From Leucoraja erinacea (taxonomy: Eukaryota): DNA of 64,000 nucleotides. Below are positions 13,660 through 51,589 of this stretch, piece by piece. The notes beneath the pieces were generated by a model. It had not been told where the DNA came from. It saw only the letters and a list, made by a program, of their open reading frames with translations, and did not search any database. Positions within the stretch are counted from its first letter, which is position 1. Every line of letters starts with the position of its first letter. The translations under genes were made by a program, and so were the position numbers. The DNA lies in NCBI RefSeq assembly GCF_028641065.1, contig NW_026576267.1:62001-126000 (forward strand). The letters run 5' to 3'.

Positions 13660-13805
13660 GGACCAACGGCCACGTGGAAGCGGGATCTCATTTGCATGGG
13701 GCCCACGAGCCACCAATCGTCTGCGGCGGAATGTCCGGGGCGGGAGCCAATGGGAATGGCGGCGCTGTGCTATCCCTCATTTGCATGCGGCCACCTATGA
13801 AAGGG
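13660..13805 (+). promoter_or_regulatory. H2B-type promoter with two octamers, two CCAAT boxes and a TATA-like box
   Basis: ATTTGCAT at 13690-13697 and 13779-13786; CCAAT at 13713 and 13747; TATGAAA at 13796. Confidence 0.8.
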
Positions 13806-13850
13806 GGTGGCCCGGCGCGCCCGGGGCACAGTCGGCGGCGGCCACGGACG

Positions 13851-14267
13851 ATGCCGCAGCGGGCAGCCAGGGGCAGAGCGCCGCGCCGGGGGTGTGGGAG
13901 GCCGAAGAAAGCGCCCGTCAAGAAGCGCCTCAAGCCGGGCGAGAAGAAGAAGAAGAAGCAGAAGCAGAAGCAGCGGCGCAAGGGCGGCCAGCTCAACTAC
14001 GGCATCTACATCTACAAGGTGCTGAGGCAGGTCCACCCCAACGTGCGCATCGCCTCGTCGGCCATGAGTGTGATCAACTCCTTCGTGCACGACGTCTTCG
14101 AGCGCATCGCCTCCGAGGCGGCCAACCTGATCCGCACCAGCAAGAGGAAGACCATGTCGTCCCGGGAGATCCAGACGGCCGTGCGCCTCCTGCTGCCCGG
14201 GGAACTGGCCAAGCACGCCGTGTCCGAGGGGACCAAAGCGGTCAGCAAATACACCAGCTGCAAATAG
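13851..14267 (+). CDS. Divergent histone H2B variant, 138 aa, with long Arg/Lys-rich N-terminal tail
   Basis: [14 protein letters not shown]...[14 protein letters not shown]...[36 protein letters not shown] is an H2B fold. Intronless; ATG 13851 is the first ATG after the octamer/TATA. Confidence 0.95.
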
Positions 14268-14328
14268 CAACGCGAAACTCCAGTACTCTCCCCTCCTTCT
14301 CTCTCAATCCACACAACTCCGACCCAAA

Positions 14329-14344
14329 GGCTCTTTTCAGAGCC
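14329..14344 (+). terminator. Histone mRNA 3' stem-loop
   Basis: ccaaaGGCTCTTTTCAGAGCCa matches the SLBP-binding consensus; a purine-rich segment lies about 20 nt downstream; AATAAA at 14499. Confidence 0.92.
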
Positions 14345-14554
14345 ATTTACCATCACAATAACCAAAGGACTAGCAGCCCCCTTGTCTTTCATTTTTCAAA
14401 GTTACTCGATGATAGGATTTAATGAAACGAAACTCAACTGTACCGGTGTCAAGACACGGAGCAGACAGTGTATTAATTCAGAATTTATGGATCTTTGCAA
14501 TAAAATATAATTTGAGTTTTAAACTTGTCTGCATTACTGATTAGAACAAAGGTC

Positions 14555-14706
14555 TATCATGGTATATGGACTCTTATCATGGTATATGGACACTCATGGT
14601 ATATGGACACTATCATGGTATATGGACACTATCATGGTATATGGACACTATCATGCTATATGGACTCTATCATGGTATATGGACACTATCATGGTATATG
14701 GACACA
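14555..14706. repeat. Minisatellite of about 20 bp (TATCATGGTATATGGACAC) x7
   Basis: Tandem copies of a motif that occurs singly in Rex/Babar 3' ends elsewhere in the window (e.g. 29022, 33358). Confidence 0.9.
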
Positions 14707-16414
14707 TTTATCTGTTTTATAGTAAATGCCTACTATTTTCTGTGTGCTTAAGCAAAGCAAGAATTTCATTGTCCTATACAGGGAAACATGACAATAAACT
14801 AACTTGGCGTCTGATACAACTCTGGGACAAAGAAAATTGCCTGCAGAATTCATTCTTACTCGGGTATCCATTGATTTTTAATGAAGCACTCACTGTTGAA
14901 TTATCAGCAATTTGTTTGCATTACTGATTATCACATGCACCGATTATGGTGGAGTGAAATTCGATTTACGATGTCCTTGGGACATCAGGAGAAGAATGGA
15001 GAGCAGGGTGAGAGAGCGACGAGACTTTGCCTTCCATCACATTGAGGAGGAGATTCACTGTGGTGGATGTTTGTGTGAACTGTGTTGGTTGTGTGGCTTG
15101 TTAATTGTTTCTCTGCACCTGGAGTATTGTATGCAGTTTTGGCCTGTTGGCCTTCATAACAAGAGGAGTTGAGTATAGGAGCAAAGAGGTCCTTCTGCAG
15201 TTGTACAGGGCCCTAATGAGACCATACCTGGAGTATTGTGTGCAGTTTTGGCCCGTTGGCCTTCATAACAAGAGGAGTTGAGTATAGGAGCAAAGAGGTC
15301 CTTCTGCAGTTGTACAGAGCCCTAGTGAGACCCCACCTGGAGTGTTGTGTGCAGTTTTGGTCCCCTAATTTGAGGAAGGACATTCTTGCCATTGAGGGAG
15401 TGCAGCAGTTATGGTCCCCTAATTTGAAGGATATTTTTGCTATTGAGGGAGTGCAGCAGTTTTGTTCACCTAATTTGAAGAAGGATATTCTTGCTATTGA
15501 GGTAGTGCAGCGTAGGTTCACCAAGTTAATTCCCGGGATGGCGGGAACCCAAACCAATTAGAAGCAGACGAGGGCATTCGATCCAATTCGTGATCCCAGC
15601 TACAAAGACAGATGTGTACAGCAATTCGTTCTTCCCCCGCACAATTAAAGCATGGAATAATCTCCACCCAACTATAGTTACCCAACCAGATGCTACTAAA
15701 TTTAAAGTAGCTCTTTCTTCCCAATAACCCTTTCTGGCTTAAGCCCTCCCTTCACCACCTCCAGTTTAAATTCCATTTGGAATATTTTGGAGGACCAAGA
15801 AACCAAGAACCAAGACTGTCATATGCTGAGAGAATGGAACGGCTGGGTTTGTATACTCTGGAGTTTAGAAAAGGATGAGAGGTGATCTTATTGAAACATA
15901 TAAGATTGTTAAGGGTTTGGACACGCTAGAGGCAGGAAACATGTTCCCGATGTTGGGGGAGTCCAGAACCAGAGGCCAGACAGTTTAAGAATTAGGGGTG
16001 AGCCATTTAGAATGGAGATGAGGAAACACTTTTTCTCAGAGAGTTGTGAGTCTGTGGAATTCTCTGCCTCACAGGGCGGTGGAGGCCGGTTCTCTGGATA
16101 CTTTCAAGAGAGAACTAGATAGGGCTCTTAAAGATAGAGGAGTCAGGGGATATGGGAAGAAGGCAGGAACGGGGTACTGATTGGGGATGATCAGCCATGA
16201 TCACATTGAATGGCGGTGCTGGCTCGAAGGGCCGAATGGCCTCTACTCCTGCACCTATTGTCTATTTGTTGTCTGACTGCAGAAACCAAATTAAATAATA
16301 ATACAATTACAATTTACTGTAGGCAAGTTGGGCTAAAGCAAAGATACAAGAAGAATTTCTCTGGTATCTTTGGGTTGAAGGACCTTGTTCTCTCCACATT
16401 TTAAATAAAATACA

Positions 16415-16700
16415 ACAAACTAAATTGTAATTGTAATTTTTAGTTCATTTTAAAGTAATTCAAATCTTGGCGCGGTTCTGACAGTTTAATTTGTCCCCAC
16501 CCCCCGTGGGCGGGTGTTTGAAAGTTTAAAGCGGCCAACGTCCAACGGTGAACTATTTATAACGGAAACCGGGCAACTCATTTGCATAGAGGGATTAGAG
16601 ATGGACCCCAAAAATCAGGGGCAACGGCCAATCAGAAAGCAGGACACCATGCCCGGTTTTCACCAATGAGCGGAGATGATCTTTATGACGTCTTCAAGCC
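16415..16700. promoter_or_regulatory. Orphan histone-type promoter module, copy 1
   Basis: TTCAAA 16459, TTGGCGCG 16467, TATTTATAA near 16554, octamer 16580-16587, CCAAT at 16628 and 16663, TGACGTC at 16686. No CDS adjacent. Confidence 0.55.
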
Positions 16701-17219
16701 CCCCCTCCCCCTCCCCAGCGACCCTCACATGACCAGAGTCCATAATGTCACAGAGTCATAGAATAATACAGTGTGGAGAGAACAAGGCCCTTCAACCCAA
16801 AGATACCAGAGGAGTTCCTCTTGTATCTTTGCTTCAGCCCAACTTGCCTAGACAATACAATTTATTTGTCATTTGAACCCCATTGAGGTTCAAACGAAAT
16901 GTTGTTTCTGCAGTCATACACACAAGAAGAAGAACCAAGACACAACACAATTTACACAAACATCCATCACAGCGCATCTCCTCCTCACTGTGATGGAAAG
17001 CAAAGACTTATCCCTCCCCTGCACTCCCCATTCCCCTCCCGATGTCAGAGTCAAAGTCAAAGCCCCCGGCGGGCGATGGCAATTGTCCCGCGGCCATTAA
17101 CGCCGCGCCGGGTGATGCAAGGCCACGCTCCGTGACTAAATTGTAATTGTAATTTTGAGTTCATTTTAAAGTAATTCAAATCTTGGCGCGGTTTTGACGG
17201 TTTAATTCCCCCTCCCCCG

Positions 17220-17760
17220 CCTGCAACTGGTCCAAAACGCCGCAGCGAGACTCCTGACGGGCACCCGAAAAAGGGACCACATCACCCCGATCCTGGCCTC
17301 TCTCCACTGGCTCCCTGTGCGGTTCCGAATAAATTTTAAGATCCTTCTTTATGTTTACAAAGCCCTTAACGGGCTTGCCCCCACGCTACATCAAAAGTCT
17401 GTTCACCCACCACACCACCTCCAGGCCCCTCAGATCGGCCGACTTGGGGCTACTGAACATCCCGTGGTCTGGGCATAAGCTCAGGGGCGACCGTGCCTTT
17501 GCGGTTGCAGCTCCTAGACTGTGGAACAGCATCCCTCTTCCCATCAGAACTGCCCCCTCCATCGACTCCTTTAAGTCGAGACTTAAAACTCATCTTTACT
17601 CTCAAGCCTTTCTTGGCGTCCTCTGAGGGAGGGCTATATGTATGTATTTATATATGTACTTAATCTATGAACCACTGTTGTGTAACGTTAGTACCTCCAC
17701 CAATGTAAAGCACTTTGGTCAACGAAAGTTGTTTTTTAAATGTGCTATAGAAATAAAATA
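17220..17760 (+). mobile_element. L2-clade LINE 3' fragment
   Basis: LQLVQNAAARLLTG...DHITPILASLHWLPVRFRINFKILL and GDRAFAVAAPRLWNSIP motifs; frameshifted. Confidence 0.85.
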
Positions 17761-17761
17761 G

Positions 17762-18565
17762 TTGGCCTACAGGGAGGAGGTCCAGCACTTAGCAGCATGG
17801 TGCGCTGACAACAACCTGGCCCTTAACTCCAAGAAGACCAAGGAGCTCATTGTAGACTTCAGGAAGTCCAGAGGCGGCACGCACACCCCCATCCACATTA
17901 ACGGGACGGAGGTGGAACGTGTTTCTAGCTTCAGGTTCTTGGGAGTCAACATCTCCGATGACCTCTCTTGGACCCACAATACCTCAACTCTGATCAAGAA
18001 GGCTCACCAGCGTCTCTTCTTCCTGAGGAGACTGAAGAAGGTCCATCTGTCTCATCAGATCCTGGTGAACTTCTACCGCTGCACCATCGAGAGCATCCTT
18101 ACCAACTGCATCACAGTATGGTATGGCAACTGCTCTGTCTCCGACCGGAAGGCATTGCAGAGGGTGGTGAAAATTGCCCAATGCCTCACCGGATCCTCGC
18201 TCCCCTCCATTGAGTCTGTCCAAAGCAAGCGTTGTCTGCGGAGGGCGCTCAGCATCGCCATGGACTGCTCTCACCCCAACCATGGACTGTTTACCCTCCT
18301 ACCATCTGGGAGGCGCTACAGGTCTCTCCGTTGCCGAACCAGCAGGTCGAGGAACAGCTTCTTCCCGGCGGCTGTCACTCTACTCAACAACGTACCTCGG
18401 TGACTGCCAATCACCAACCCCCCCGGACACTTATTATTATTTATTCAAATCATTTGCTATGTCGCTCTTCCAGGGAGATGCTAAATGCATTTCGTTGTCT
18501 CTGTACTGTACACTGACAATGACAATTAAAATTGAATCTGAATCTGAATCTGAATCTGAATCTGA
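17762..18565 (+). mobile_element. Rex1/Babar LINE 3' fragment with (GAATCT)n tail
   Basis: YREEVQHLAAWCADNNLALNSKKTKELIVDFRK...KKAHQRLFFLRRL...FYRCTIESILT...LLPSGRRYR. Related fragments at about 7105-7640(-), 10030-10700(-), 28560-29150(+), 32630-33245(-), 40700-41350(-), 43990-44640(+), 50815-51385(-), 58200-58555(-). Confidence 0.88.
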
Positions 18566-20111: not shown

Positions 20112-20472
20112 TAAGGGCCTGTCCCACTGTACGAGGTAATTCAAGAGTTCTCCCGAGTTTTCCCCTGATTCGAACTCGGAGAATGTCTGTGGCCGGTCCG
20201 TGGGAGTTTGTGGATGTCTCGTAGTGGCTCGTAATGCTAACAGTAGGTACTCGGGAAATCCAGTAAACTCGTGACGTTTTTTCAACACTGTGCAAAATGT
20301 CCACAAGTACAAAAACACTCGTGAAAAAATGGTTACTCTTTACTCGTACGAGCCGCTACGAGACATCCACAAACTCCTACGGACCCGCTACGGACATTCT
20401 CCGAGTTCGAATCAGGGGAAAACTATGGGGGAACTCTTGAATTACCTCGTAGAGTGGGACAGGGCCCTTTAA
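20112..20472. mobile_element. MITE with long terminal inverted repeats, probably PIF/Harbinger
   Basis: AAGGGCCTGTCCCACT...AGTGGGACAGGGCCCTT TIRs extending over more than 60 bp, TTA/TAA context. Related copies at about 4585-5372 and 62232-62796, both interrupted by CR1. Confidence 0.7.
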
Positions 20473-20669
20473 TGAGAGGGCAATTAACCCAGATGGAAAT
20501 CTTGCCAGAAAAATTCCAAGTGCAAAACTTTCTTCAAGACCCCCCCCCCCCCGGGAGAATATCAGCAGCGAGCAGAGATTACAGGGTATTTCTGGACATC
20601 CTGTTATATTCCTGGAGTCTGTACACTCTGCCGAATAAACGCTGAGAAGTCTTTCTGTTTGTTAATAAT

Positions 20670-22305: not shown

Positions 22306-23867
22306 CTACCAAACATTGAGAGACGAAGTGTTTCTTTCTAATTGATTGAAAGATACAGCATGAACACAGGCTTTTAGACCACTGTGTCCCTGTCGATCAT
22401 CGATTACCCGTTTACAAAAGTCTTCTTCCCGCTGCCCCCCCGCACCCCCCCCCCCCCCCCCCCCCCCCCCATCAGTCTGAAGAAGGGTCTCGACCCAAAA
22501 CGTCACCTATTCCTTCGCTCCATAGAGGCTGCCTCAACCGTTGAGTTTCTCCAGCATTTTTGTCTACACCTGTTCACACTAGTTCTGTGTTATCCCACTT
22601 TCCCATCCACTCTTTAGACTTTAGACTTTGGAGATACAGCGTGGAAACAGGCCCTTCGGCCCACCAAGTCCACATTGACAATGATCACCCCACACAAATA
22701 GCACTTTCCTACAGTGGGGGCTAATTTACACGTTACAGAAGCCAATTAACCTATAAACACGTACGTCTTTGTGAAGTGTGGGAGGAAACCAGAGCACCCG
22801 GAGAAAACCCATGCAGTCACAGGGAGAACGTACAAACTCCGTACAGACAGCATCCGTAGTCAGGGACGAACCCGGGGATCTAGCGCTTTGATCTTGGGCT
22901 TGTACACTCTGGAGTTTAGAAGGATGAGAGGGATTCTTATTGAAACATATAAGATTATTAAGGGTTTGGACACGCTAGAGGCAGGAAACATGTTCCCGGT
23001 GTTGGGGGAGTCCAGAACCAGGGGCCACACACAGTTTAAGAATAAGGAGTAAGCCATTTAGATCGGAGACGAGGAAACACTTTTTCTCACAGAGAGTTGT
23101 GAGTCTGTGGAATTCTCTGCCTCAGGTGGAGGCCGGTTCTCTGGATACTTTCAAGAGAGAGCTAGATAGGGCTCTTAAAGATAGCAGAGCCAGGGGATAT
23201 GGGGAGAAGGCAGGAACGGGGTACTGGTTGGGGATGATCAGCCATGATCACATTGAATGGCTGTGCTGGCTCGAAGGGCCGAACGGTCTCCTCCTGCACC
23301 TGTTGTCTATTGTCCATTGTCTATTGTGAGGCAGCAACTCAGCCACTGCGCCGCCCAGATTTTTTAATTTTATTACAATTATGATGCTTCTAAATCAATA
23401 CCAAAGATACCAATACATCATTCAAAATCTCTGGGTATATTTTTTTATTGGGTAGGGCTTATTTTAAGTGTTGCAAAAGCAATACCAAGACAAAATTCCA
23501 AATATCTGGGTATATTTTTTTATTGGGTAGGGTTTATTTCAATAGTCCATTTACATTCAGATTTTGAATTTAAATTGAAATTCAATCAATTTGAATTTGA
23601 TTCAATCCCGTCTCCACCATTTTGCAATGTTAAATATTTTGGTTTTCATTTGTATCATATAATACAATAGTCCTTTTAAATACAGATTTTGAATTTAGAT
23701 TGAAATTCATGCAATTTGAATTTGATTCAATCCTGTCTCCACCATTTTGCAATGTTAAATATTTTGGTTTTCATTTGTATCATGTATCCAATGGATAAAA
23801 GTATCACATGTATCCAATTCGATTGACGGCTGCAAATCTATTATAGCCCAGTCTAAAAAGTTTAAGT

Positions 23868-23883
23868 GGCTCTTAAAAGAGCC
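23868..23883 (-). terminator. Histone mRNA 3' stem-loop
   Basis: Minus strand reads caaacGGCTCTTTTAAGAGCCactta, 46 nt after the H2B stop codon. Confidence 0.93.
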
Positions 23884-23929
23884 GTTTGACGGTCTCGTCG
23901 CAGCTTTTGATGGAGAGGGGAGAACGGAT

Positions 23930-24352
23930 CTACTTGGAGGAGTTGGTGTATTTGGTGACCGCTTTCGTCCCCTCCGAGACGGCGTGTTTGGCCAGTTCTC
24001 CGGGCAGCAGCAGGCGGACGGCGCTCTGGATCTCCCGGGAGGAGATGGTCTGGCGGCGGGTGTAGTGCACCAGGCGGGAGGCCTCGGAGGCGATGCGCTC
24101 GAAGATGTCGTTGACGAAGGAGTTGCTGACGCTCATGGCCTTGGAGGAGATGCCCGTGTCCGGGTGCACCTGCTTCAGCACCTTGTAGATGTAGGCGCTG
24201 TAGCTCTCCTTCCTGGCCTTCCTGTGCTTCTTGTCGCCCTTGCGGCTCATCTTCATGGCCGTCTTCTTCGAGCCCTTCTTGGAGATGGCGCCTTTGGCGC
24301 TCGCCGCCGAGGCACCACCAGTGGCGGCGGCGGCGGCAACGACGGTCGGCAT
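23930..24352 (-). CDS. Histone H2B variant, 140 aa, with Ala-rich N-terminal extension
   Basis: [27 protein letters not shown]...[16 protein letters not shown]...[37 protein letters not shown]. Intronless and followed by a stem-loop. Confidence 0.96.
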
Positions 24353-24429: not shown

Positions 24430-24520
24430 TCTCTGATATAGGCAGCGGTATGCAAATGAAGGATCAGAGAACGCCGATTCCTATTGACTGACTCCTTGCA
24501 CGGATGCACCAATCGCAGCA
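24430..24520 (-). promoter_or_regulatory. H2B promoter (octamer, TATA-like box, CCAAT)
   Basis: Minus strand ATTTGCAT (24457-24450) followed by TATATC (24440-24435); CCAAT at 24509. Confidence 0.8.
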
Positions 24521-24589: not shown

Positions 24590-25434
24590 TGAACTTTACG
24601 CTATTTTGATGGCAGTTCGGTGGATAGAACAGGTGCAACCATGCAAAATATTAATTTGTAGCGTCTCATTGTCTGCTATCCAGAGTATTGGGTCTGGTGC
24701 GTCCCATAGGCGGCCTGACCTAGTGTATGAAATTCTACTACTATTAAGCCAAGTAACAAGGAAGGGTAGTGACGTGACTTTGTTGTGGGTCCCAGCACAC
24801 ATTGGTGTGCTAGGAAATGACAAAGTGGACAAATTAGCAAAAGAGGCCGTTAAAAAAGAGAACATAGAGGTAAACCTACAAATATCCAAATCTGAAGGAA
24901 GACACATTGTGTGCAAGAAAATAAATCAGGAATGGCAACAATACTGGGAACAGGAGACAAAGGGGAGACACCTCTATTCGCTACAAAACAGAGTGGGCAT
25001 CACAGCAAGAAGAGGGGGAAACAGGAGAGAACAGGTAGTATTAGCAAGATTGAGGATAGGCCACACCCACCTGAACAGCACATTAAAAATGTTGGGAAAA
25101 CACCCTACTGGGATGTGTGAGGAATGCCATCAGCCGGAAACAGTTCAGCATGCTCTAGTTGCATGTAGAAGATATGCAACAGAAAGAAGAGTTTTGATCA
25201 ATGAAATGAAGAAAATTGGAATGACAGATATATCAGAAAAGAACATTCTAGAGTATGGAGGGGAAGGAAAAGGAGTAAATTTGTTGTTTAATTTCTTGAG
25301 GGCCTCTGGCCTTATAAAAATGATATAAAGTAAAGACATGAGGACTGTGGAGTGAAGCCAGAAGGTGGCAGCAATGCAACATTGTGGATGCCGGCTGCCG
25401 TAAAACTCCAAAGAAGAAGAAGAAGAAGAAGAAG
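24590..25434 (+). mobile_element. 5'-truncated RNase H-bearing LINE (I group, Nimb-like) with (GAA)n tail and 14-bp TSD
   Basis: ELYAI...ILICS[V]SLSA...LLWVPAHIGVLGNDKVDKLAKEA RNase H, RLRIGHTHLN and a CxxC...H...C knuckle. TSD AAGTCACAGAGGCG at 24576-24589 and 25435-25448. Confidence 0.88.
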
Positions 25435-25498
25435 AAGTCACAGAGGCGGCAAGTTTGAATTTTATTTATTGCCACGTGCATCGAGGTACAGTGAAAAG

Positions 25499-25984
25499 CA
25501 GAGATCCTATAGCGGAGCAAGATAGACCACTCCTGCTAAATGCAATGGGCTTTAGACACAAGTGCTGGAGAAACTCAACGGGTGCAGTAGCATCTATGGA
25601 GCGAAGGAAATAGGCAACGTTTCTGGCCGAACCCCTTCTTGAGACGTGTAGTATGCAACGGAGCGGAACGTGGGCCTTTTTTACATCCATTTCAGTAACC
25701 CGACCTGACTCGCAGTGTAATCAACGTTGCAGGTGAACAGTTTGTGTTAATAGATTATAACTCTGAAAATGAGAAGAAGATTTTTACCAAAGAACTTATA
25801 TTTTTACGAGGATGTTTCCTTAACCGGCTTCCATCTCCGCACTAGTATCTTTGCTCCACTACGGGATCTTCGGTGCGGAGACGGAAACCGGTTATGGAAA
25901 TGGGGCCGAAAATTATCCATGAATCTGCCCATGACCGTACTACGTCTTTTTCGTCGAGTGGACTATCTTGCTATAGGATCTTTG
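25499..25984. mobile_element. Non-autonomous DNA transposon (hAT-like), same family, with an internal Penelope-derived insertion
   Basis: CAGAGATCCTATAGC...GCTATAGGATCTTTG TIRs and a perfect 8-bp TSD GTGAAAAG. Confidence 0.82.
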
Positions 25985-29159: not shown

Positions 29160-29250
29160 AGACAGCATCGACAAGCCTGCCAAACGGCTCTTTTAAAAGC
29201 CACTCATACATTTAAAATGAGACTACAATTGGTCAATAGAATGGTAGATA
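29160..29250 (+). pseudogene. Orphan histone 3' UTR and stem-loop with no CDS
   Basis: caaacGGCTCTTTTAAAAGCCactca at 29186-29201 (one stem mismatch). Flanks align with the 3' UTR of the 23930-24352 H2B. Upstream sequence is a Rex/Babar fragment. Confidence 0.7.
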
Positions 29251-31894
29251 TAGATACAAGGAACGGCAGACGCTGGCTTATAAAAAACTCAAGGTGCGGG
29301 TCTAATTCCGAGGGTCAGGCAGCATCTCTGGAGAACATGGATAGGTGACGTTTGGGATCGGGTCTGTCCTTCACACTGCAATAGAATGCTAGGCATCGAA
29401 TTGGTGATATATTACATATATAGGAACGAAAATTAAAACATTGGAAATCTCGGGAGTGCTGGAAAGTCTGGCCAGGCAGCGCCCGGGAAGAAACAGTTGA
29501 TGTTTCAGATCGAAACCCCTTCCTCAGATTGTCAATTTAGTTTATCACCATAAATTATACAGAAAACGAACCTTTGTCTCTTGTAACAACAAATGTGTAA
29601 TTGCACTCTGAATACCTTGAGATACTTGCAACGCCTAGAGGCATTCAGTTGCGATGTTCCATTGCCATTTTGTGCTTAGTCGTTTAAATTCTATTCGCCT
29701 TCGACTGAAATTATATTTCCCACGTCTCATAGTTTATTTCGAATAGGCTAACGAAGGATGTTTGTTATGAAAATAAATCGAAGTTTAAAAAGGCAATGTC
29801 TGGGATCACAAAATATGATCTCCAAAATAGTTTCTCAATTCATAACGCCGATGACCCCAAAGTAGGAAGAAGGGTTTCGGCCCGAAACGTTGCCTTTTTC
29901 CTTCGCTCCATAGATGCTGCTGCACCCGCTGAGTTTCTCCAGCTTTTTTTGTGTCTCCCCAAAGTAGGATATGACTTGCAAAGTATATGTAACATTTCTC
30001 GGGAATTTCACCCACAACCCGTCGTCACCAGTTGCTAATGTGCAAATTCAGAGGATATTCAATTAGATCAATATCCATTTGTTGCAGATATTTCTGTTTG
30101 GGTTGTCAACACTTGGGTTTAATAATTAAAGACAAGGTGACGCAGCAGGCACGTTGCATGAACAGCTGCCTGTCCCGCTGAGTTGCTCCAGCATTTTGTG
30201 TCTATCTTCGGTTTAAACCAAAGATATTAGTGGAGATCCTCTAGTATCTTTGGTTTAAACCAGCATCTGCAGTTCCTTCCTTCGACCTTGCATTGTCGGG
30301 CAGCTTGACAGACATCCGCTGTTCATCTGATCAAATGACTCCGAGCCGATGCACCCATCGTTTGTGCTTCATCCTTCATTTCAGAAGTCGTTGACCATAT
30401 CTCCCGCTTGCAGTCCGCTTTCTGCCCAATGTATGCCAAAACCCAGAGATTGTATCCCTGTTCCCTCAAATACCAAATCCATCAACTGATAATGTTGCTA
30501 TATCCTCCCACTGAAAACAGAAAGGATTATCTTGTTCAACGAATAACGAAACGCTTCCAAAAGTACGTTAAGACCTAGTATCTTTGTTTAAGATGTCCTT
30601 TATCAAAGATCGCCAGGCATCAAGGGGACCCAGCCCAAAAAAAGTCGCGAATGTGATTGTTTCACGCGTTACCTGGAGAGCAGCCCAGTGAAAGGCAGGG
30701 AAAATGCTGCTTATTTCATCGTAATTTCCAAAGGGCAATGAAAAATGGTAACTTCCCCAAAGAGGCAATGTTCATTTAAAATCTCACACTGCGTCAAGTT
30801 TTGTTGAATGTTGTTATGAAGGGATGTGGACAAAAGCGTGTATATGGAGTTTGGGCACGTCGCCATTTCATTAGCTGGGGAAAGTCGGGCCTTAACATAC
30901 AGCAAGGAAAATTACGGCACAGGAACAGGTCCTTCTGTTCATAAATGCAAATGTCGAACATAATAAACTAATCTCATATGCCTACAAATGATCCATATTC
31001 ATGTGCCTAATAAAAGCTGATTGGAATCTACTATAGTACGTCTTTGAAGATGAGAAACAAATTGTTGGCGCAACTGTGGGTCAATGGAGCATAGGTGCAG
31101 GAGGCCATTGGAGCCAGCACCGCCATTCTCGGTTTCCTAGTCCTCCAAAATATTCCAAATGGGATTGATACTGGAGGCGGTAGAGGGTTCTTGGGAATCA
31201 GCCTTGATTCAAGGTGATCATCCCCAATCAGTACCCGTTCCTGCCTTCTCCCCATATCCCGACTCCGCTATCTTTAAGAGCTCTCTCTTGAAAGCATCCA
31301 GAGAACCGGCCTCCGCCGCCCTCTGAGGCAGATAATTCCAGACTCACAACTCTGTGTGAAAAAGTGTTTCCTCGTCTCCCTTCTAAATGGCTTACCCCTT
31401 ATTCTTAAATAAACGCAGACGATGAAACACTTTTTCTTATATAAGGGGCCAGGCAGCATCGCTGGAGAAAGAGAATAAATAGGCATCCACCAGTGGCCGA
31501 AATTTGAGGAGCTATGAGAGCGCCAGGAGCCATTTTTAGCAATCTGGGGCAGGCGAGGAAGAGCAAATCGATATTCTTCCTTTCCCACGTCTAATTGCTG
31601 CTGCTAATTCTGATTTTCTCCGTATTACGGCTCTCCATTCCCATTATTCCCGCCCCGTCAGGAAGACCCGCCATTTATTACACTGGCCGTCGAAGCTCAT
31701 GAGAAACCCGCTCGGCCTCGTTGCGTTTCCAAAACGCGGGCAGCTTTCGGAAAGGGAAGGATTCCCTCCAACGTGGTGGAGCCGTCGAAGTTTAAAATAA
31801 AAGAGAAATAAAGAATTATTGACTGTATTTCGTTTAAATTGTGGTGAATCTGGCTGCGATGGCGCAGGGCCATTCAGCAGCACAGAAACGTCCT

Positions 31895-32392
31895 TTAACA
31901 GCACTTGGCTCCCACCGGGTTGCAACATTTCGCCTCCTTTTTCCTGCGGTTGAGCTCTTTTTTCGGCGGCGCTCGCTTCTCGGGCGGAGCCCGGCGTTGT
32001 TCCTGTTCTTGCTCCTGCTGCTGCTGCAGCTTCTTCTCGGCCTTCTGCTCGCGGTCGAGGCGGAGGCAGGCGGTGGTGGCCGCCGCCACCTTCCTGCGGC
32101 CGCGGGGGGGAGGCGGGGGCTGCTCCTCCTCCTGCGAGCTGTCCGGCGTCAGCCCCGACACGGCCTTGCGCATGTTCCGGCGGTTCTCCTCCTCGTCGTA
32201 GCCGTTGGAGCGCACGAACTCCCGCAGCGCCAGCAGCGAGCGGCGGCTGAGTCGCCGGTGCGCCGACACCGCCTGCCTCATCAGCTGCACGATCAGTTGC
32301 TGCGTCCGCCGGCTCCGCCGGTAAGGCCGCCCTCGGCGTCGTGGGGCGGGCGCGGCGCCGGGCACGGTCTTGGGTCTGGGTCTGGCAACCAT
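31895..32392 (-). CDS. Arg-rich, highly divergent linker-histone H1-derived protein, 165 aa (protamine-like candidate)
   Basis: IVQLMRQAVSAHRRLSRRSLLALREFVRSNGYDEEENRRNMRKAVSGL aligns to H1 globular helices ([48 protein letters not shown]). Intronless GC-rich ORF with upstream TATA and minus-strand AATAAA near 31674-31679. Confidence 0.72.
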   Translation of the reverse strand: MVARPRPKTVPGAAPAPRRRGRPYRRSRRTQQLIVQLMRQAVSAHRRLSRRSLLALREFVRSNGYDEEENRRNMRKAVSGLTPDSSQEEEQPPPPPRGRRKVAAATTACLRLDREQKAEKKLQQQQEQEQEQRRAPPEKRAPPKKELNRRKKEAKCCNPVGAKCC

Positions 32393-32494
32393 CTGAAGCT
32401 GCGCGTAGTTATAGCTCGGACACAAGCGGCTTCTCCCTCCAACCCTCAGCGTCGCCGCTCGACTCGCAGCTGCAGCTCAGCGCCGCCCTCACCC

Positions 32495-32580
32495 CCCTTT
32501 ATAACCGCGCCCCCCAACAATCCCACCAATCACAGAACGCCCCTCCCACAACACGTCACAGGAGGGCCGGTGACGTCAAC
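32495..32580 (-). promoter_or_regulatory. Promoter with TATAAA, CCAAT and perfect CRE
   Basis: TATAAA on minus at 32503-32498, CCAAT at 32526, ACGTCA half site at 32553, TGACGTCA at 32571-32578. Confidence 0.75.
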
Positions 32581-33434
32581 CAGGATCAGGGACAACCCCC
32601 CCCCCCCTCGGATATCTAATGATAATCAAGTTAGATATAGATATGCCATTTATTGTCACTATACATGTACAGTGAAACTGAAAGCTGCTCGTACTCAGTG
32701 CATACATACAATTTTACACAAAAAACAAGAAACAGAAAAACAAAACAGAAGGGAGATGGGGGGGGGAATAGGTGCACAACTTCTACGGCGCTACATACAT
32801 ATATACATATATACAGATGGAAGTCCGTGTTGGGCGGTGTAGTCAGTGCATGTGTGGATTTGAATTTATGGTAGATATAATTCTCGGGAAGCAGCTATTC
32901 CTGAGTCTGTTTGTCCTGGATTTGATGCACCTATAGCGCCTTCCAGAGGGCAGCAGGTCGAACAGTCCAAACGCAGGATGGGAGCTGTCTTTGGTGATCT
33001 TCTTTGCCCTGCTAAGGCAGCGGGAGGTGTAGATGTCCATCAGGGAGGGGAGAGGGCAACCAATGATCCTCTGCGCTGTCCTGGTTACCCTCTGAAGCCT
33101 CTCCCTGTCTGCCATGGTGCAGCTGCCATACCATGCTGTAATGCAGTATGTCAGTAGGCTCTCGATGGACGAGCGGTAGTAGGTCAGCAGCAGGTTAGAG
33201 TCCAGGTTGTGCTTCCTGAGGACCCTCAGGAAGTGCAGCCGCTTCCTGAGTTCAAGTGAGTTTATTGTCATGTGTCCCTGTATAGGACAATTAAATTCTT
33301 GCTTTGCTTAAGCACACAGAACATAGTAGGCATTTACTACAAAACAGATAAATGTGTCCATATACCATGATATAAATATATACACACATGAATAAATATA
33401 CTGGTAAAGTGCAAATAACAGAAAGTGGTTATTA

Positions 33435-34354: not shown

Positions 34355-34530
34355 NNNNNNNNNNNNNNNNNNNNNNNNNNNNNNNNNNNNNNNNNNNNNN
34401 NNNNNNNNNNNNNNNNNNNNNNNNNNNNNNNNNNNNNNNNNNNNNNNNNNNNNNNNNNNNNNNNNNNNNNNNNNNNNNNNNNNNNNNNNNNNNNNNNNNN
34501 NNNNNNNNNNNNNNNNNNNNNNNNNNNNNN
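34355..34530. other. Assembly gap (N run)
   Basis: Run of N. Confidence 1.
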
Positions 34531-35657
34531 CTTGACTTGAATAATAATAATAATATTATAATAATAATAACATCAAATCGTCCGATCAGCAGAGAAGATT
34601 ATTGGCTGCAACGTTTCCTCCATTGATAGAAACATGGAAACATAGAAAATAGGTGCAGGAGTAAGCCATTCGGCCCTTTGAGCCTGCACCGCCATTCAAT
34701 ATGATCATGGCTGATCATCCAACTCAGTATCCCGTACCTGCCTTCTCTCCATACCTCCTGATCCCTTTAGCCACAAGGGCCACATCTAACTCCCTCATAA
34801 ATATAGCCAATGAACTGGCCTCAGCTACCCTCTGTGGCAGAGTGTTCCAGAGATTCACCACTCTCTGTGTGAAAAATGTTTTTCTCATCTCGGTCTTAAA
34901 AGGATTTCCCCTTATCCTTAAGCTGTGACCCCTTGTCCTGGACTTCCCCAACATCGGGAACAATCTTCCTTCATCTAGCCTGTCCAACCCCTTAAGAATT
35001 TTGTAAGTTTCTATAAGATTCCCCCCTCAATCTCCTAAATTCTAGCGAGTATAAGCCAAGCCTATCCTGTCTTTCTTCATATGAAAGTCCTGACATCCCA
35101 GGAATCAGTCTGGTGAACCTTCTCTGCACTCCCTCTATGGCAATAAAGTTCTTCCTCAGATTTGGAGACCAAAACTGTACCCAATACTCCAGGTGTGGTC
35201 TCACCAAGACCTTGTACAACTGCAGTAGAACCTCCCTGCTCCTATACTCAAATCCTTTTGCTATGAATGCTAACATACCATTCGCTTTCTTCACTGCCTG
35301 CTGCGCCTGCGTGCCTACTTTCAATGACTGGTGTACCATGACACCCAGGTCTCGTTGCATCCTCTCACCCTGGCCACAAACTCTTTGAATCACTTCCCTC
35401 TGGAAGGCGACTCCAGGCTGTCAAAGCTGCCACAGCCAGATATAAAAACAGTTTTTATCCACGAGTAGTTGCTCTACTCAACAGCCAAAAATCTGTAGCC
35501 TCCCCTTGATCTGGTATTTTGTTGGTTCACATGCTTGATCAATGGTGTTTTATCATTATGATTAATGTTTAGTGTTTTCTGAGTCATTCGTAACTGTCAC
35601 TGTATGTCATGTTGTTACTTGTGGGCGGAGCATCAAGGCAAATTCCTTGTATGTGAA

Positions 35658-36056
35658 NNNNNNNNNNNNNNNNNNNNNNNNNNNNNNNNNNNNNNNNNNN
35701 NNNNNNNNNNNNNNNNNNNNNNNNNNNNNNNNNNNNNNNNNNNNNNNNNNNNNNNNNNNNNNNNNNNNNNNNNNNNNNNNNNNNNNNNNNNNNNNNNNNN
35801 NNNNNNNNNNNNNNNNNNNNNNNNNNNNNNNNNNNNNNNNNNNNNNNNNNNNNNNNNNNNNNNNNNNNNNNNNNNNNNNNNNNNNNNNNNNNNNNNNNNN
35901 NNNNNNNNNNNNNNNNNNNNNNNNNNNNNNNNNNNNNNNNNNNNNNNNNNNNNNNNNNNNNNNNNNNNNNNNNNNNNNNNNNNNNNNNNNNNNNNNNNNN
36001 NNNNNNNNNNNNNNNNNNNNNNNNNNNNNNNNNNNNNNNNNNNNNNNNNNNNNNNN
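35658..36056. other. Assembly gap (N run)
   Basis: Run of N. Confidence 1.
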
Positions 36057-37926: not shown

Positions 37927-37944
37927 GTACTTCATCTTTGGTAA

Positions 37945-38725
37945 AACTGTGACACCCGTGCCTCGGTAAGCGGGGCCCAGTCCTCACGGTTGTCAACCGC
38001 AGTACTATCCGCACCTACGGCACGAGGATCCTATCCCTCTCTTTTGACTCCCGACCGTATGTTTGGACATTTATCATTGCAGCGGTGGCCCAGCGCCGAC
38101 TTCCTGCTGGCCGTTTCCCTCATGGTGGACCTACGGGGCGGGCGCCTCATTCAACTGGCGGAACTCGGCCCCACGACCCTCGACTGCATTCTACCCGCAG
38201 CTCTACGCGGTGGCTGAAGTAGAGGGCCCATATGCTTCCATCCTCGGGGAGTTCCCGGCGCTACTCACCCCCCATTTCAACACGCGCGGCTCCCAAGCAT
38301 TGGGTGGCGCACCATATTCCCACCACTGTACTGCCATTACACGCCCGGGCACGCAGGCTTGTGCCTGACAAGCTGCGGGGATTACAGGCGCCTGAACGCC
38401 ATTACAACCACGGAACGCTACCCTGTCCCACATATACAGGATTTTTCGGCCCATCTGGAGGGCGCCACCTTTTTCTCCAAGGTGGACCCGGTCCGTGGTT
38501 ATCCCCAGGTCCTTGTGCGCCCGGAAAATGTGCCCAAAACTGCCACCATCGGTCTGTTTGAGTGGCTCCACATGCCCTTCGGTTTGAAGAACGCTGTTCC
38601 AGCGCCTAATGGACATGGTCGGTCGGGGATTGAACTTTGCCTACATTTACCTCGATGACATCCTGGTCGCGAGCCGCTCCCAACAGGAGCACCTCACACA
38701 CACACACCTGCGGACGCTATTGAAC
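37945..38725 (+). mobile_element. Second decayed Gypsy pol fragment from a different family
   Basis: CGDYRRLNAITTTERYPVPHIQDF...FSKVD...YPQV...PKTA...GLFEWLHMPFGLKNA and YLDDILVAS. Confidence 0.85.
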
Positions 38726-42652: not shown

Positions 42653-42776
42653 TTTTTGTTGCTTCAACCTGCAGATGATCAGAAGATGGATACAAAATGC
42701 TGGAGACAACACAGTGGGTCTGGCAACATCTCTGGAGAAAAGCCATAGGTGAGGTTTGGGGTCCAAGGATTCCGAC

Positions 42777-42810
42777 CAAAGATACTAGAGGAGCTCCTCT
42801 AGTATCTTTG
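42777..42810. mobile_element. 34-bp perfect palindromic micro-insertion with 8-bp TSD
   Basis: CAAAGATACTAGAGGAGCTCCTCTAGTATCTTTG is its own reverse complement; flanks are attccgac / gttccgac. Other copies at 16339-16372, 16798-16831, 30219-30252, 42103-42136, and a 31-bp relative at 34285-34315. Confidence 0.85.
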
Positions 42811-43835: not shown

Positions 43836-43870
<35 letters not shown>

Positions 43871-46800: not shown

Positions 46801-48807
46801 AGGTGCCTAGGCCGGGTGAGGTGGCCATTCTTGATCAATCGAGACCAAGGACACGCTAGAGGCAGGAAACATGTTCCCAATGTTGATAGATCGGCGGGTC
46901 AGATTTGGCCCCTGAAGCCAAGGCTCTCGAACTATTGGCCAGACAGATCCCTTCCCATGGCCGACTTCCAGTCCCCCTCCCATGGCCGTGACCTCTGTTA
47001 GGGTGGAAAAATGGATAACACGGCAAGGCTCTGGAACCAATCCTGCCAGAAAATCTGTGTTGGACCTGTAATATAAGAATTCAAATGAAACTAGAATAGT
47101 CATAGACCTCGTCCACCCGTTGCATAATTAAAGTTATGATGGTATGTCGAAGATGTAGGAACAAGTATTTAAATATTCTATATTTTTTATTTTTACTTTT
47201 AAATTCTTTACAATTCTGATAACATTTACTGAAGACCTTCCCAGAGATGTTCACATCTCAGATATAATTGGTTCTAATGCGGTTGAAGGGTTATGTAATG
47301 AAACTACCCAAGTTTTCAAAAGTGGCAACTCTGCTTTCTTTTTAAAACTTCTTTTCATGAAAAGTGTTGAGAAGATGGAACCAGTTATGAAAATTAACCT
47401 TCCAGAACCTGGTTCTGAGGCCAGGAAATTGCCATTAACCTTGTTACGGGGAGACCTATGTTCCCCTTACAATGATAAGTTTAGTGTTAAGTGCATTTAT
47501 TCTCTTAAGAGTGTTCGTAAACCTAAAGGACATTTGGGGGTAGTTTTTAAAAATGAGGAAACTGCCCCCAAATTGTATTACTAATTGTTGGAGAGAAGAT
47601 AAACTTGGATGAAAATGAACCACAATTTTTTTTTTTTTCCTTGGAATTCTAAAGATCATTCCAAACCGATTGAGGCGCTGGATTCACTTTAAAAATGTAA
47701 GTGTTTTTCGTTGATGACGAACCGGAATAAAGAATAAAGCTGTCCGTTTCTGTCTCGAGTTATTCTGGGAGTTCAATAAAATATAAGGGCAAAGCAACTT
47801 GTTATGGTTTGTTGAACCGCAGATGTTCAATCGTCCATCTCAAAGTATCCATTGACACTACCTCTCTCGCATACTTCAACCAGGTCCGCAAGAGCGGTAT
47901 TAAAAGGTGGGGGTGGTTGCTTGGTAAGATAGCACAGTGTCTTTCGTTACCACATAACTTGTTTCTATTTTTGTCGTGATGTGTGTGTGGTAGCGGGAAG
48001 GGTGTCAGGTGTTTTGCAATGGTAGTACACAAACAGTTTTCAACCTCAGTGAATCTTGAATTGAACACTCGGTTAAAATCAGAATTGGCGTTTGTAGCCT
48101 GCGGTGCAGAACTATCCCAATGAAAATAAACACAATAACACCAATTGAGAAATGACCCAATTCTCAGGCCAGCTTGGGAGACCAATTCTATAATGTGTTG
48201 GGCGTGCATGTGGTAGTTGCTGGGTCCCGCAATAAAATTGCCAAATGTCTTTGGTTGCTGCAAGTTCCTCCAAGTTGCGCCAGCGCTGGCAATCAGCAAA
48301 CTTGGTGTGTTAATGAGACGGGGCTTAGAAAGGTCTTTCCCGGTTGCGTTCGACGTTGGAGCAAAGAGCCCCTCTGGAATATGAGCATCAACTATTCCCC
48401 CGCAAGACGGAAACTTGACATTTGCCCAGGTGTCGAGCCGATGCGATGTTCTAAGCGGGAAAGTGGGGAATTTTCTTTCCAGGCGGGCGAGGCAACCCGG
48501 TGGCGAGGCGTTAGGGAGAACGCAGGGGTGTTTCCGAACCGGGGCGTCGCTCGGGGTGTGAAATGCACGGGGTTTGGGGTCGGATGGCGCGGGGGTTTGG
48601 TGGCGGGAGCTCGATTTCGGGGCGGCGAGGGTGATGTTTGTGCGGGGAGAAAGCACAAGTTGTGGCGGCGGGGGAGGGCGGTTGAGTCTACCGCGTCCGC
48701 GCCGCCGCTTTAACAGGCGGGGAGGCGGCGCGGCGCCGTCAATGCAGCCGCGGCTGCGGAGCGGAGAGGAGGGGAGGTGAGGTGAGGCGACGCGGACACA
48801 CTTGGCT

Positions 48808-49593
48808 ATGACCGACATGGAATCGCCGGGCGTGGACTTTTCCACCGCGGCCACCTCGCTGCTGCTGCAGTCGCCGATGCCGCCGCCGGCGGTGCCGCCG
48901 CCGCTGCTGCTGCCCGAGGAGACGGACTCGCTGGACATCGCGGTGGCCGTGAAGAAGAAGCGCCGGCCGTACCGCCACAGGAAGTTCGGCTGCACCGTGG
49001 CCGAGCAGATCATGAGGGCGGTGGCGGCCACCAAGGAGCGGCGGGGGCTGTCGGTGGCCGCCGTCAAGAAGCTGCTGTCGGCCAGCGGCTACGACCTGGC
49101 TCGCCACAACACGCGGGTCAACCGCGCCGTCCGCACCCTGGTCAGCAAAGGCTCGCTGGTGCAGACGACGGGCAGCGGCGCCTCGGGCTCGGTCCGGCTC
49201 GGCAGGTGCCCGCAGGACTTGGTGGCGGCGGCGGCGACGTTCAAGTTGCCGCTGGGGGCGGCTGCTCGCCGGACGGTGTTATCCAGGAGGACGGCGGCCA
49301 AGAAGTCCAAGAGGCTGATGGCGAGGGGCGGTGGTGGAGGCAAGAAGAGGCGGCGGCGCAGTCAGTTGAAGAAGGCTGGCCGGCACCACAAGAAGGCGGG
49401 AGGCGGCGGCTTGAAGAAGGTGACCGCCCGCTGGAAAACGGTCCGGGCGAGGAGGGCGCTGGCCAAGGGCCGCATCTTCAGGCGAAGGGTCAAGAAGGTG
49501 GAAACGAAGATTGTTCGGGACAGCGTCAAGCCCACGGACTTGGTGGATGAGAAAGCGACTCTTACGCAAAACACTGAACCGAACAAGTGCTGA
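48808..49593 (+). CDS. Linker histone H1-like protein, 261 aa, Arg-rich variant (protamine-like candidate)
   Basis: TVAEQIMRAVAATKERRGLSVAAVKKLLSASGYDLARHNTRVNRAVRTLVSKGSLVQTTGSGASGSVRLG is a complete H1/H5 winged helix followed by a basic tail. Intronless, in a CpG island; AATAAA at about 49667 and 49679; no stem-loop seen. Confidence 0.92.
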   Translation: MTDMESPGVDFSTAATSLLLQSPMPPPAVPPPLLLPEETDSLDIAVAVKKKRRPYRHRKFGCTVAEQIMRAVAATKERRGLSVAAVKKLLSASGYDLARHNTRVNRAVRTLVSKGSLVQTTGSGASGSVRLGRCPQDLVAAAATFKLPLGAAARRTVLSRRTAAKKSKRLMARGGGGGKKRRRRSQLKKAGRHHKKAGGGGLKKVTARWKTVRARRALAKGRIFRRRVKKVETKIVRDSVKPTDLVDEKATLTQNTEPNKC

Positions 49594-51589
49594 ACGGTTT
49601 AGACTTAAGTTAACCTCAAAATGTGTAACAGACATATGTGTGCTAAATGATTTTTTTTGTGGATCTAATAAAGGAAAAAATAAAATCGTGCATCATTGTG
49701 CATATACTTGTGTTTGAAAAAAAATTTCAATTGCAAACGGGATTCTTGCGTCTCTGTCTCTGCCCCTTTCCTAGGCCTGCACCACCCGCCTTACCCAAGG
49801 AGTAAACCACCTCACAAGGGACCAAGGAGTAACACCTCACTGAGACCAAGGAGTAACCACTTCACTGAGACTACTGTCTATGGCATGTTTAAGAGAACTG
49901 CGTTGCAGATGCTGGAAAAATTTACGGTAGACAAAAATGCTGGAGAAACTCATGAGACCAAGAAGTGAACCCACCTCACAGACTTACTGTCTAATGAAAT
50001 GACATGTTGAAGAAAGAACTGCAGATGCTGGGAAAATATTGCCATTAAATCTTTCCCCTCACCTTAAAACTATTTTCTGGTCTCTGATTCCCCTACTCAG
50101 TTAAAAAAAAAACTCCACTCTAGTTATTCCCCCTCATTATCTTATACACCTCTTCTCCTGTAGCTTAGACTCAAGTACTGGCAACATCCTCGTACATATC
50201 CGCGCTCCGTCCAGTTTAGCAACTGGCAGGGTATCCAAAAGTGAACACATCTCCAAATGCAGTCTCGCCAAGGTCTTCCACAACTGACATAAATCCCAAC
50301 CTCTATATTCAATTCCCTGACTGATGAAGGCCAATGTGCCGTACACTTTCTTGACTACCCTATCTTCTTCCGTCTGCAGAAGGGTCTCGACCCGAAAGGT
50401 CACCTATTCTTTCGCTCCACAGATGCTGCCTCACCCGCTGAGTTTCTCCAGCATTGCGGTCTACCGTCCATTTTTACAGCATCTGCAGTTCCTTCTCAAA
50501 CCTATCTTCTTGTGATGCTACTTTCAGGGAACTTTGTATCTGCCTCGTTAGATCCCTCTGCTTCATAGCATTCCCCAAACCTCCGCCGTTCACAGTGAAT
50601 CCGAAAGAGGAAGATATAATTGTTAGCTGTAGATTTCGGAAAGCGTCGGTCTAACTATGACTTTTGATGGGCAAAATTCTTACCACCTCCTTCCCAATAC
50701 AGAATATGAGACACGAGACATTAGATGTGATTTTAACGCATTATAGTCATAGAGTGATAGAATGTGAAAACAGGCCCTTCGGCCCAACTTGCCCAAACCA
50801 GCCAACATGTATTGTGTTGTATATCTTTATTGTCATTTCCCGAGTATTCACATACCCAGAGGAAACAAAAAAACGTTGCTCAACCAGTGTCCATTCAGTG
50901 TGCATAAAAAATAAATAGAAATAAGAATACATATATCATGAACAAATTAACACTATACTAAACATCAACAGGCGTTCCGATTGGCAGCGGCACGACAGTG
51001 GCTCTGCTGCAGTGTGTCCAGGTTGGTGGTTGGTGCGCGATACTTTGGCAGGGGGCAAAGTCCGCTTAGCAGTCTTATAGCCTGCGAGTAGAAGCTGAGG
51101 AGCATCCTGCTGGTTTTGCAGCTAATGCTCCTGTACCTCTTCCCAGATGGCAGGATGGAGAATATGTGATGCGATGGGTGGTAGGGATCTTTGATGATGG
51201 AGATGGCTCTGCTGATACACCTCTTCCTGTATATGTCCAGCAGGAAAGGGGGTGGAGCACCAATAATTCTGCTGGCGGTCTTCACAATCCTGTCTAGTTG
51301 GTGCCGTTGGTACGCCTTGCAGCTCTCGAACCAGGAAGTGATGCCGTAGGTTAATGTGCTCTCGATTGTCCCCCTATAAAAAGTCCCAGCTACACTAGCC
51401 CCACCTGCCCGTGTTTGGTCCATATCCCTGCAAACCTGTCCTATCCTTGCAGCTATCTAACTGTTTCTTAAATTAGACAGAGATTCGCATGAAAAATTAT
51501 CAGTTACTTTAGCTGTCGAATAACATCAGTAGATCTTAATGGACACTGAGGCACACACATATAGATCACAACATCAATATTATTTAAAC

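Follow-up and report, generated by a model that had tools for sequence, protein, structure and literature searches.

What kind of chromatin is served by a handful of divergent histone genes scattered through repeats, and in which cells, is the question raised by a 64,000-nucleotide stretch of DNA from the skate Leucoraja erinacea (NCBI RefSeq assembly GCF_028641065.1, contig NW_026576267.1, positions 62,001 to 126,000 of the forward strand), referred to below as the window and numbered from its first letter. A preliminary description of this DNA had proposed a spermatogenic chromatin cassette made up of two variant H2B genes and two Arg-rich, H1-derived genes. These genes are called here H2B-A, H2B-B, H1-B and, for the wing that its product has lost, the wingless H1-derived gene. 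They form a conserved, chondrichthyan-specific cluster of histone variants that are real genes and are linked on the scaffold, and they are read, at about even confidence, as four functional genes for germline chromatin proteins, most likely of spermatogenesis.

Open reading frames (ORFs) of at least 90 amino acids were listed between 13000 and 50500, and 4 of the resulting 67 were assigned to histone families. All four are intact and intronless, run uninterrupted at their positions amid repeats (start codons ATG at 13851, 24352, 32392 and 48808), and are spaced 8–17 kb apart, with transposon debris in between whose ORFs bear the ALKBH8_N, RNase H and GIY-YIG signatures associated with long interspersed nuclear elements (LINEs). 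The survival of four such ORFs among transposable-element debris, as first described, was borne out by the ORF listing, Pfam and profile comparison. Public protein sets contain the 138-, 140- and 261-amino-acid products exactly, all of them on one 131166-bp contig; the 165-amino-acid product is missing from these sets, which leaves the wingless gene without annotation in the genome it comes from. The cluster genes are considered real because of their Pfam matches, the three exact annotated products, and the stem-loops.

H2B-A (13851..14267, plus strand; 138 amino acids, ending KYTSCK) matched the Pfam family Histone at 2e-22 (80.1 bits against a cut-off of 26.4), which places it among the core H2B histones, as a divergent member whose tail is enriched in Arg and whose L1/L2 loop regions are altered. 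Its promoter (13690..13803, plus strand) holds two copies of the octamer ATTTGCAT (13690–13697 and 13779–13786) and, 9 nt past the second, the TATA-like TATGAAAG (13796–13803); here as throughout, promoter elements are consensus matches only. The 3' stem-loop (14324..14369, plus strand; GGCTCTTTTCAGAGCC at 14329–14344) scored 30.9 bits with Rfam Histone3, under the gathering score of 34, and despite this sub-threshold score it matches the pattern exactly, with a perfect 6-bp stem and a CCAAA flank. The tree paired H2B-A with a relative from Rhinoraja (support 98/93), both on long branches (0.65 and 0.35), and set the pair in a clade (88/84) that unites H2Bs of sharks, chimaera and skates and stands apart from the canonical-like H2Bs. 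That Rhinoraja relative carries an N-terminal tail rich in proline, glutamine and histidine, unlike the Arg/Lys tail of H2B-A, so fast is the turnover of this tail. A KYTSCK terminus was found in 10 of the 15 aligned chondrichthyan H2Bs; the chondrichthyan clade that bears it often has a second Cys, in ERIACEA, and is distinct from the canonical-like H2Bs ending TSSK. H2Bs of the TSCK type are multi-copy in sharks: a cluster in Heptranchias counts 13 member sequences, and one in Pristiophorus 7.

H2B-B (23930..24352, minus strand; 140 amino acids, ending NSSK; Pfam Histone 5.6e-22, 78.7 bits against the cut-off of 26.4) is likewise a core H2B histone, with an Ala-rich N-terminus and a near-canonical histone fold. 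Its promoter core (24433..24457, minus strand) consists of the octamer ATTTGCAT (24450–24457) and TATATCAG (24433–24440), and both H2B promoters share the order of octamer, 9-nt gap and TATA-like box. The octamer occurs 7 times in the window, with 3.4 expected, and 3 of the 7 copies lie upstream of the two H2B genes. The 3' stem-loop of H2B-B (23843..23888, minus strand; GGCTCTTTTAAGAGCC at 23868–23883) scored 35.3 bits with Rfam Histone3, above the gathering score of 34. Both H2Bs are assigned to the replication-dependent, stem-loop class of histone genes by their lack of introns and by these stem-loops, that of H2B-B above the Rfam cut-off and that of H2B-A below it. The two proteins are 68% identical to each other over the fold, both contain HAVSEGTKA, and they show 60–80% identity to other H2Bs. 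H2B-B shares one 90% identity cluster with Rhinoraja XP_078272092.1 and Amblyraja XP_032903287.1, and in the tree it falls in its own skate clade with a support of 100/99.

The NCBI name of the Rhinoraja relative of H2B-B is 'H2B type 1-A-like'. Orthology of H2B-B to the mammalian testis variant TH2B (H2B.1, H2B type 1-A) was rejected, given the mammalian origin of H2B.1 stated in PMC8857922, the separate skate clade, and comparison with the PDB, where scores did not favour type 1-A (189.1 bits, against 184–194 bits for ordinary H2B, with no separation). Since H2B.1 arose in mammals, TH2B is at most an analogue of the skate H2Bs; what they have in common is the stem-loop, the lack of introns, an altered N-terminal tail and a fold in which little has changed. 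An identity with H2B.K was also rejected, as H2B.K has an intron according to the same paper.

H1-B (48808..49593, plus strand; 261 amino acids, ending NKC) matched Pfam Linker_histone (PF00538) at 6.9e-17, with 61.9 bits against a cut-off of 22.4 and profile positions 4–74 of 74 covered, and is thus a linker histone by that profile. In its product, an acidic/Pro-rich leader and the motif KKKRRPYRHRK precede a complete H1 globular domain, after which comes an Arg-rich C-terminal domain. By score the protein is nearer to somatic-type H1 (1GHC 75.3 bits, H1.4 63.6) than to H5/H1.0 (27–29 bits). Among 8000 scored candidates, 17 relatives were found at E ≤ 0.001; relatives come from Amblyraja (88%), Rhinoraja (69%), Pristis (52%), several sharks, Mobula, Narcine and Callorhinchus. 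In a 12-sequence alignment of the family, the block KKKRRPYRHKKFGCTVAEQIM...KERRGLSVAA is almost invariant, while leader and tail are variable. The region upstream of the gene is GC-rich, without a TATA box; downstream, two AATAAA signals (49667..49684, plus strand; 49667–49672 and 49679–49684) were read directly, and neither Rfam nor the pattern scan found a stem-loop in the 3' region. H1-B is an H1 gene of somatic-H1 ancestry with an Arg-rich C-terminal domain, of the polyadenylated type. Sharks also have a second Arg-rich H1 paralogue family, of 277–312 amino acids and with an Arg/(Arg+Lys) ratio of 0.49–0.56, whose members in Heterodontus and Chiloscyllium plagiosum lie on contigs equal in size to those of the H1-B relatives.

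The wingless H1-derived gene (31895..32392, minus strand) encodes 165 amino acids from its ATG, among them 30 Arg, 13 Lys and 5 Cys; Arg and Lys make up 26% of the protein, and 70% of that is Arg. An Arg-rich N-terminus leads into three helices that match H1 helices 1–3, no beta-hairpin follows, and the rest is made up of an acidic/Pro linker, a long helix and, at the C-terminus, KCC...KCC; AlphaFold2 placed helices at 25–44, 52–62 and 71–79, a disordered acidic/proline stretch, and a long helix at 104–133. BLASTP against H1-B gave 29% identity over 73 amino acids (E 5e-5). A phmmer search of 1.84 billion representatives returned one match, Mobula hypostoma XP_062903895.1 ('histone H1.1-like', 171 amino acids, E 2.9e-11), which starts at the proposed wingless ATG, is 42–43% identical, and has in common the start MVAR and the motifs NGYD.EENR, PRGR..AAATT.CLR and PPKK. 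A word-index search with the wingless gene gave nothing at E ≤ 0.01 among 693 candidates, and neither the wingless protein nor its Mobula relative matched Pfam. Compared by hhalign, the wingless/Mobula profile matched the H1-B family with 92.2% probability (E 5.8e-7) over 69 columns, including the pre-globular RRPYR-type motif, and the second shark H1 paralogue family with 89.0% over 58 columns. The same two-sequence profile aligned with 1GHC (chicken H1 globular domain) at E 1.7e-7 over residues 6–52 of 75, that is, over helices 1–3 only, and the complete PF00538 winged helix is lacking. By these profiles the wingless protein is H1-derived and not a full PF00538 member: it is an H1-B-type paralogue that has kept the RRPYR-type motif and helices 1–3, lost the beta-hairpin wing, and gained Arg and five Cys.

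Upstream of the wingless gene (32498..32578, minus strand) lie the palindromic cAMP response element (CRE) TGACGTCA (32571–32578), a TGACGT half-site, ATTGG (32526–32530) and TATAAA (32498–32503), with the CRE, the single palindromic one in the 64 kb, ~70 bp upstream of the TATAAA. The defining marks of CREM/CRE-driven postmeiotic genes are a CRE that functions close to a TATA box and transcription confined to spermatids. An AATAAA signal (31674..31679, minus strand), read directly, follows ~215 nt past the stop codon. Stem-loops on the H2B genes and poly(A) signals on the H1-like genes, as the preliminary description had it, were confirmed by Rfam and by direct reading. Its attribution of a separate promoter and 3' signal to each gene held for the 3' side, where a stem-loop or AATAAA follows all four; on the promoter side there are the consensus matches, and a TATA-less region at H1-B.

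In two other DNA runs, whose source is a different individual or a closely related species (14 differences over 1204 bases), the wingless ORF was found intact on contigs that span the promoter, ORF and 3' flank and end at repeats. Within the 498 bp of the ORF there were 4 substitution sites and 0 indels, and in the 752 bp of flanks from the same runs at least 11 substitution sites and at least 3 indels. The gene is flanked by very high-copy repeats (31201–31468 and 32608–33000), whose contig depth in genomic runs is 10^5 to 10^6 and, when summed, reaches ~3x10^6, and which are transcribed in both of the RNA runs considered below.

The Arg/(Arg+Lys) ratio was 0.44 for H2B-A, 0.33 for H2B-B, 0.70 for the wingless protein and 0.54 for H1-B, with canonical-like H2Bs at 0.30–0.33; the Arg enrichment claimed for three of the four was found in H2B-A, the wingless protein and H1-B, all of them above canonical-like H2B. 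The Mobula relative of the wingless protein has a ratio of 0.67. Since all 12 of 12 members of the H1-B family are Arg-enriched (0.45–0.73), Arg richness is ancestral in that family. The C-terminal endings with Cys (TSCK, AKCC and NKC) are as described, and are weak as a shared signature, TSCK being clade-wide and NKC and AKCC lineage-specific: a terminal NKC is present in 2 of 12 H1-B relatives, and the Mobula relative of the wingless protein lacks AKCC and does not end CC.

Searches of the window by tblastn with H2B-A, H2B-B, a canonical-like shark H2B, an H2A-H2B fusion, H1-B, a chimaera H1 and the Mobula relative returned only the four known loci in the 64 kb. The H2A half of the fusion query had no tblastn match in the window, and short H2A, H3 and H4 motifs gave 0 six-frame matches there. 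The stated absence of H2A, H3, H4 and of canonical H2B or H1 was thereby upheld, for H3 and H4 by short motifs and the stem-loop count only. With replication-dependent histone clusters the skate genes share the octamer and TATA promoters of the H2Bs, the 3' stem-loops and the lack of introns; they differ from such clusters in that the 64 kb offer neither an H2A/H3/H4 partner nor a canonical H2B or H1, in their 8–17 kb spacing, and in the poly(A) signals of two genes. One further histone-type stem-loop (29181..29225, plus strand; Rfam Histone3 29.1 bits, below the gathering score, with one pattern mismatch) stands directly after a LINE-like tail, with no histone ORF and no tblastn match nearby, and may be a relic of a lost cluster member.

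The preference for the germline comes from the Arg shift, the fast-evolving tails over conserved cores, the CRE/TATA promoter and, as leads only, the ESM Atlas neighbours of the wingless protein, which are named 'spermatid-specific linker histone H1 family' (0.89) and 'testis-specific H1 histone' (0.87). The NCBI name of the Rhinoraja relative of H2B-B is a further hint of the germline. A role in spermatogenesis is plausible by analogy, from composition, promoter motifs and the resemblance to H1fnt and HILS1, and also to TH2B. In germ cells that are replicating or in meiosis, the H2B variants would then be built into nucleosomes and make them looser, the part played by TH2B in mammals. Poly(A) mRNAs would supply H1-B and the wingless protein at a later stage, and the Arg-rich tails of these two would bind linker or naked DNA during spermatid condensation, as those of H1fnt and HILS1 do, the two proteins acting before or alongside true protamines. 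Elasmobranch sperm carry small true protamines (scylliorhinines), and beside these the 165- and 261-amino-acid proteins would be accessory or transitional at most.

The mammalian H1fnt and HILS1 genes are intronless and of the polyadenylated type. The skate H1 genes are similar to them in H1 derivation, in the intronless, polyadenylated-type structure and in their Arg-rich regions, and the Atlas neighbours of the wingless protein bear such names; they differ in that H1-B is nearest to somatic-type H1 globular domains and that the wingless protein has no wing and no match to Pfam Linker_histone, and the likeness is taken as one of analogy. In PMC7788777 and PMC6069787, H1fnt (H1T2, H1.7) and HILS1 (H1.9) are reported to be spermatid-specific and tied to the histone-to-protamine exchange. 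The sperm proteins of the PL-I type offer another parallel, a Lys-to-Arg shift on an H1 scaffold, with the globular domain reduced and cysteines added in the wingless protein; the defining feature of PL-I proteins is their presence in spermatid or sperm chromatin. The literature searched, in which few subscription journals were covered, contained no description of these chondrichthyan genes, or of histone genes between LSM2 and VARS1.

Linkage in other species was judged from contigs of identical size, which indicate the same scaffold and not adjacency, Callorhinchus excepted. The Rhinoraja relatives of H1-B, H2B-A and H2B-B are all on a contig of 41491963 bp, the Amblyraja relatives of H1-B and H2B-B on one of 33336678 bp, and the Mobula relatives of H1-B and the wingless gene on one of 199023498 bp. 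In Callorhinchus, an H1-B-like protein and two TSCK H2Bs are encoded on one 64591-bp contig, which is real short-range linkage.

Several results weigh against a linked, spermatogenic set of genes. Within the window, two assembly gaps (runs of N at 34355–34530 and 35658–36056, together spanning 34355..36056) separate the wingless gene from H1-B; each borders on transposon tails and AAT-type microsatellites, and neither touches an ORF or affects a reading frame. Since both gaps intervene, the placing of H1-B with the other three genes hinges on two scaffold joins, and outside the window short-range linkage was seen in Callorhinchus only, with the other species showing the same chromosome-scale scaffold. 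The single TGACGTCA is not above chance (0.65 expected per window; at least one in 45 of 100 shuffles), and in these alignments the C-terminal cysteines are not conserved signatures within their families. The mean predicted local distance difference test score (pLDDT) of the wingless AlphaFold2 model was 61.6, which is weak evidence for a fold; Foldseek on this model gave 0 of 171 matches at E ≤ 0.001, with H1 chains in the first four rows, and VIA-align gave no linker histone among its best 50 rows (best Z 5.8), the matches being generic three-helix ones. The derivation of the wingless protein from H1 is based on sequence profiles because these fold searches gave nothing significant. The substitutions in its ORF were 3 nonsynonymous to 1 synonymous, as under neutrality. 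Two RNA runs (tissue unspecified, ~5–6% read) had zero depth over the wingless region 31469–32607, apart from 0.34 in one bin, and no RNA run was among the listed sequencing runs that contain H1-B. Because the tissue is unspecified and only 5–6% was read, the two runs neither support nor refute a testis-restricted wingless gene.

The same genes might equip the egg. Oocyte or cleavage-stage variants stored for early embryos, like oocyte H1, H2B.K and cleavage-stage H2B, make a rather unlikely explanation of the cluster, for which several features can nonetheless be cited: oocytes, too, express germline histone variants with divergent tails, the Rhinoraja relative of H2B-A has a tail rich in glutamine and histidine, the promoter of H1-B is GC-rich and has no TATA box, and the sequence evidence favours neither sex. 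Arg-rich H1 tails, on the other side, are tied to sperm or terminally condensed chromatin and are not known from oocyte H1, and in the Atlas the wingless protein has spermatid and testis H1 clusters beside it. According to PMC8857922, H2B.K and H2B.N are mainly oocyte-expressed, H2B.K with a polyglutamine tail, and both contain introns, in contrast to H2B-A and H2B-B, which are intronless stem-loop genes.

A somatic use is less probable still. It would make H1-B a differentiation-linked variant like H1.0/H5, for example of nucleated erythrocytes, and the H2Bs a second replication-dependent class of cartilaginous fishes, as their ordinary H2B promoter and stem-loop design would suit, together with the multiple copies of TSCK-type H2Bs, of the same clade as H2B-A, in sharks (13 in Heptranchias, 7 in Pristiophorus). 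H1-B is distant from H5/H1.0, however (27–29 bits, where GH1 scores 75), the core and linker histones of somatic cells do not usually evolve as fast as H2B-A and the wingless gene, and the two RNA runs of unspecified tissue contained essentially no wingless reads. That some or all of the four ORFs are unexpressed relics of a decaying histone cluster, kept open by GC-rich composition, seems very improbable: the orphan stem-loop at 29181–29225 without an ORF, the repeat-filled interval, the spurious antisense ORFs of 333 and 421 amino acids in GC-rich stretches, and a wingless gene that is unannotated and without RNA reads would fit such decay, whereas the ORFs are intact and show family-specific conservation over skates, rays, sharks and chimaera, the wingless ORF has no indels in other individuals while its flanks do, and promoter and 3' elements have been kept.

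To our knowledge, mammals, insects and some invertebrates are the only groups in which the histone variants of the germline have been mapped well. If the spermatogenic reading is right and the genes are expressed in testis, cartilaginous fishes have their own linked set of testis-type H2Bs and Arg-rich H1 derivatives, one of them without the DNA-binding wing, and the long-standing proposal that protamine-like proteins originate from H1 would become directly testable in an early-branching vertebrate; in the staged testis of skates, germ-cell stages are physically separated, which is helpful for such testing. Should the genes be somatic or maternal instead, they would still bring to light an H1 paralogue family not described before, along with an H2B clade whose members end in Cys-Lys.

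The cluster had been placed between LSM2 and VARS1. On the right flank, a motif scan and translation located an LSM2-like terminal exon (61503..61625, minus strand), which reads ...VKNCFIRGSVVRYVQLPADEVDTQLLQDAARKEAMQQKQ and ends ...CFIRGSVVRYVQLPADEVDTQLLQDAARKEAMQQKQ, each followed by the stop codon, and which we take to be the LSM2 C-terminus; the 41-amino-acid piece had no match in Pfam. On the left flank are exons of an EF1-gamma-type glutathione S-transferase (GST) domain (654..5774, minus strand; Pfam GST_C 5.1e-9, PDB 5dqs EF-1-gamma E 4.9e-13 and 2.6e-12, Atlas GST_N clusters). As 5' exons, they are consistent with the N-terminal extension of VARS1; the catalytic domain lies beyond the window, and the gene may be VARS1 or EEF1G. 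An LSM2-like exon and GST exons flank the cluster, with neither gene identity proven by a database match.

LSM2 and VARS1 are neighbours of the class III type in the major histocompatibility complex (MHC), and the MHC has an old linkage with the major histone cluster, in which the testis histones of mammals are found. In a wider form of the spermatogenic reading, which we consider doubtful, the locus would be an ancient spermiogenic chromatin module dating at least from the common ancestor of chimaeras and elasmobranchs, in which an H1 gene duplicated in place and one copy, by losing the wing and becoming rich in Arg and Cys, came to be a living intermediate on the path from H1 to protamine-like proteins, in a vertebrate lineage that has true protamines as well; the LSM2/VARS1-like neighbours may then echo the linkage of MHC and histone cluster.

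A scan for a hidden protamine gene (ORFs of at least 25 amino acids, at least 20% Arg and at least 30% Arg+Lys) yielded 3 ORFs, all of which were rejected. The one of protamine-like look, a 45-amino-acid ORF with a run of eight Arg (25388–25525, plus strand), is an (AGA)n microsatellite beside a transposon, and the Arg-rich ORFs at 38031–38150 and 61133–61300 were dismissed from their printed sequences alone. Antisense ORFs overlie the GC-rich genes, one of 333 amino acids at the wingless gene (31841–32842, plus strand) and one of 421 amino acids, without a Pfam match, at H1-B (47802–49067, minus strand), and both are read as composition artefacts. Between the histone cluster and the LSM2-like exon lies a CALHM-like exon (56527..57081, minus strand; Pfam Ca_hom_mod 3.4e-14), and a 228-amino-acid ORF beside it (55174–55860, minus strand), which has no Pfam match and a predicted membrane-like start, perhaps belongs with it.

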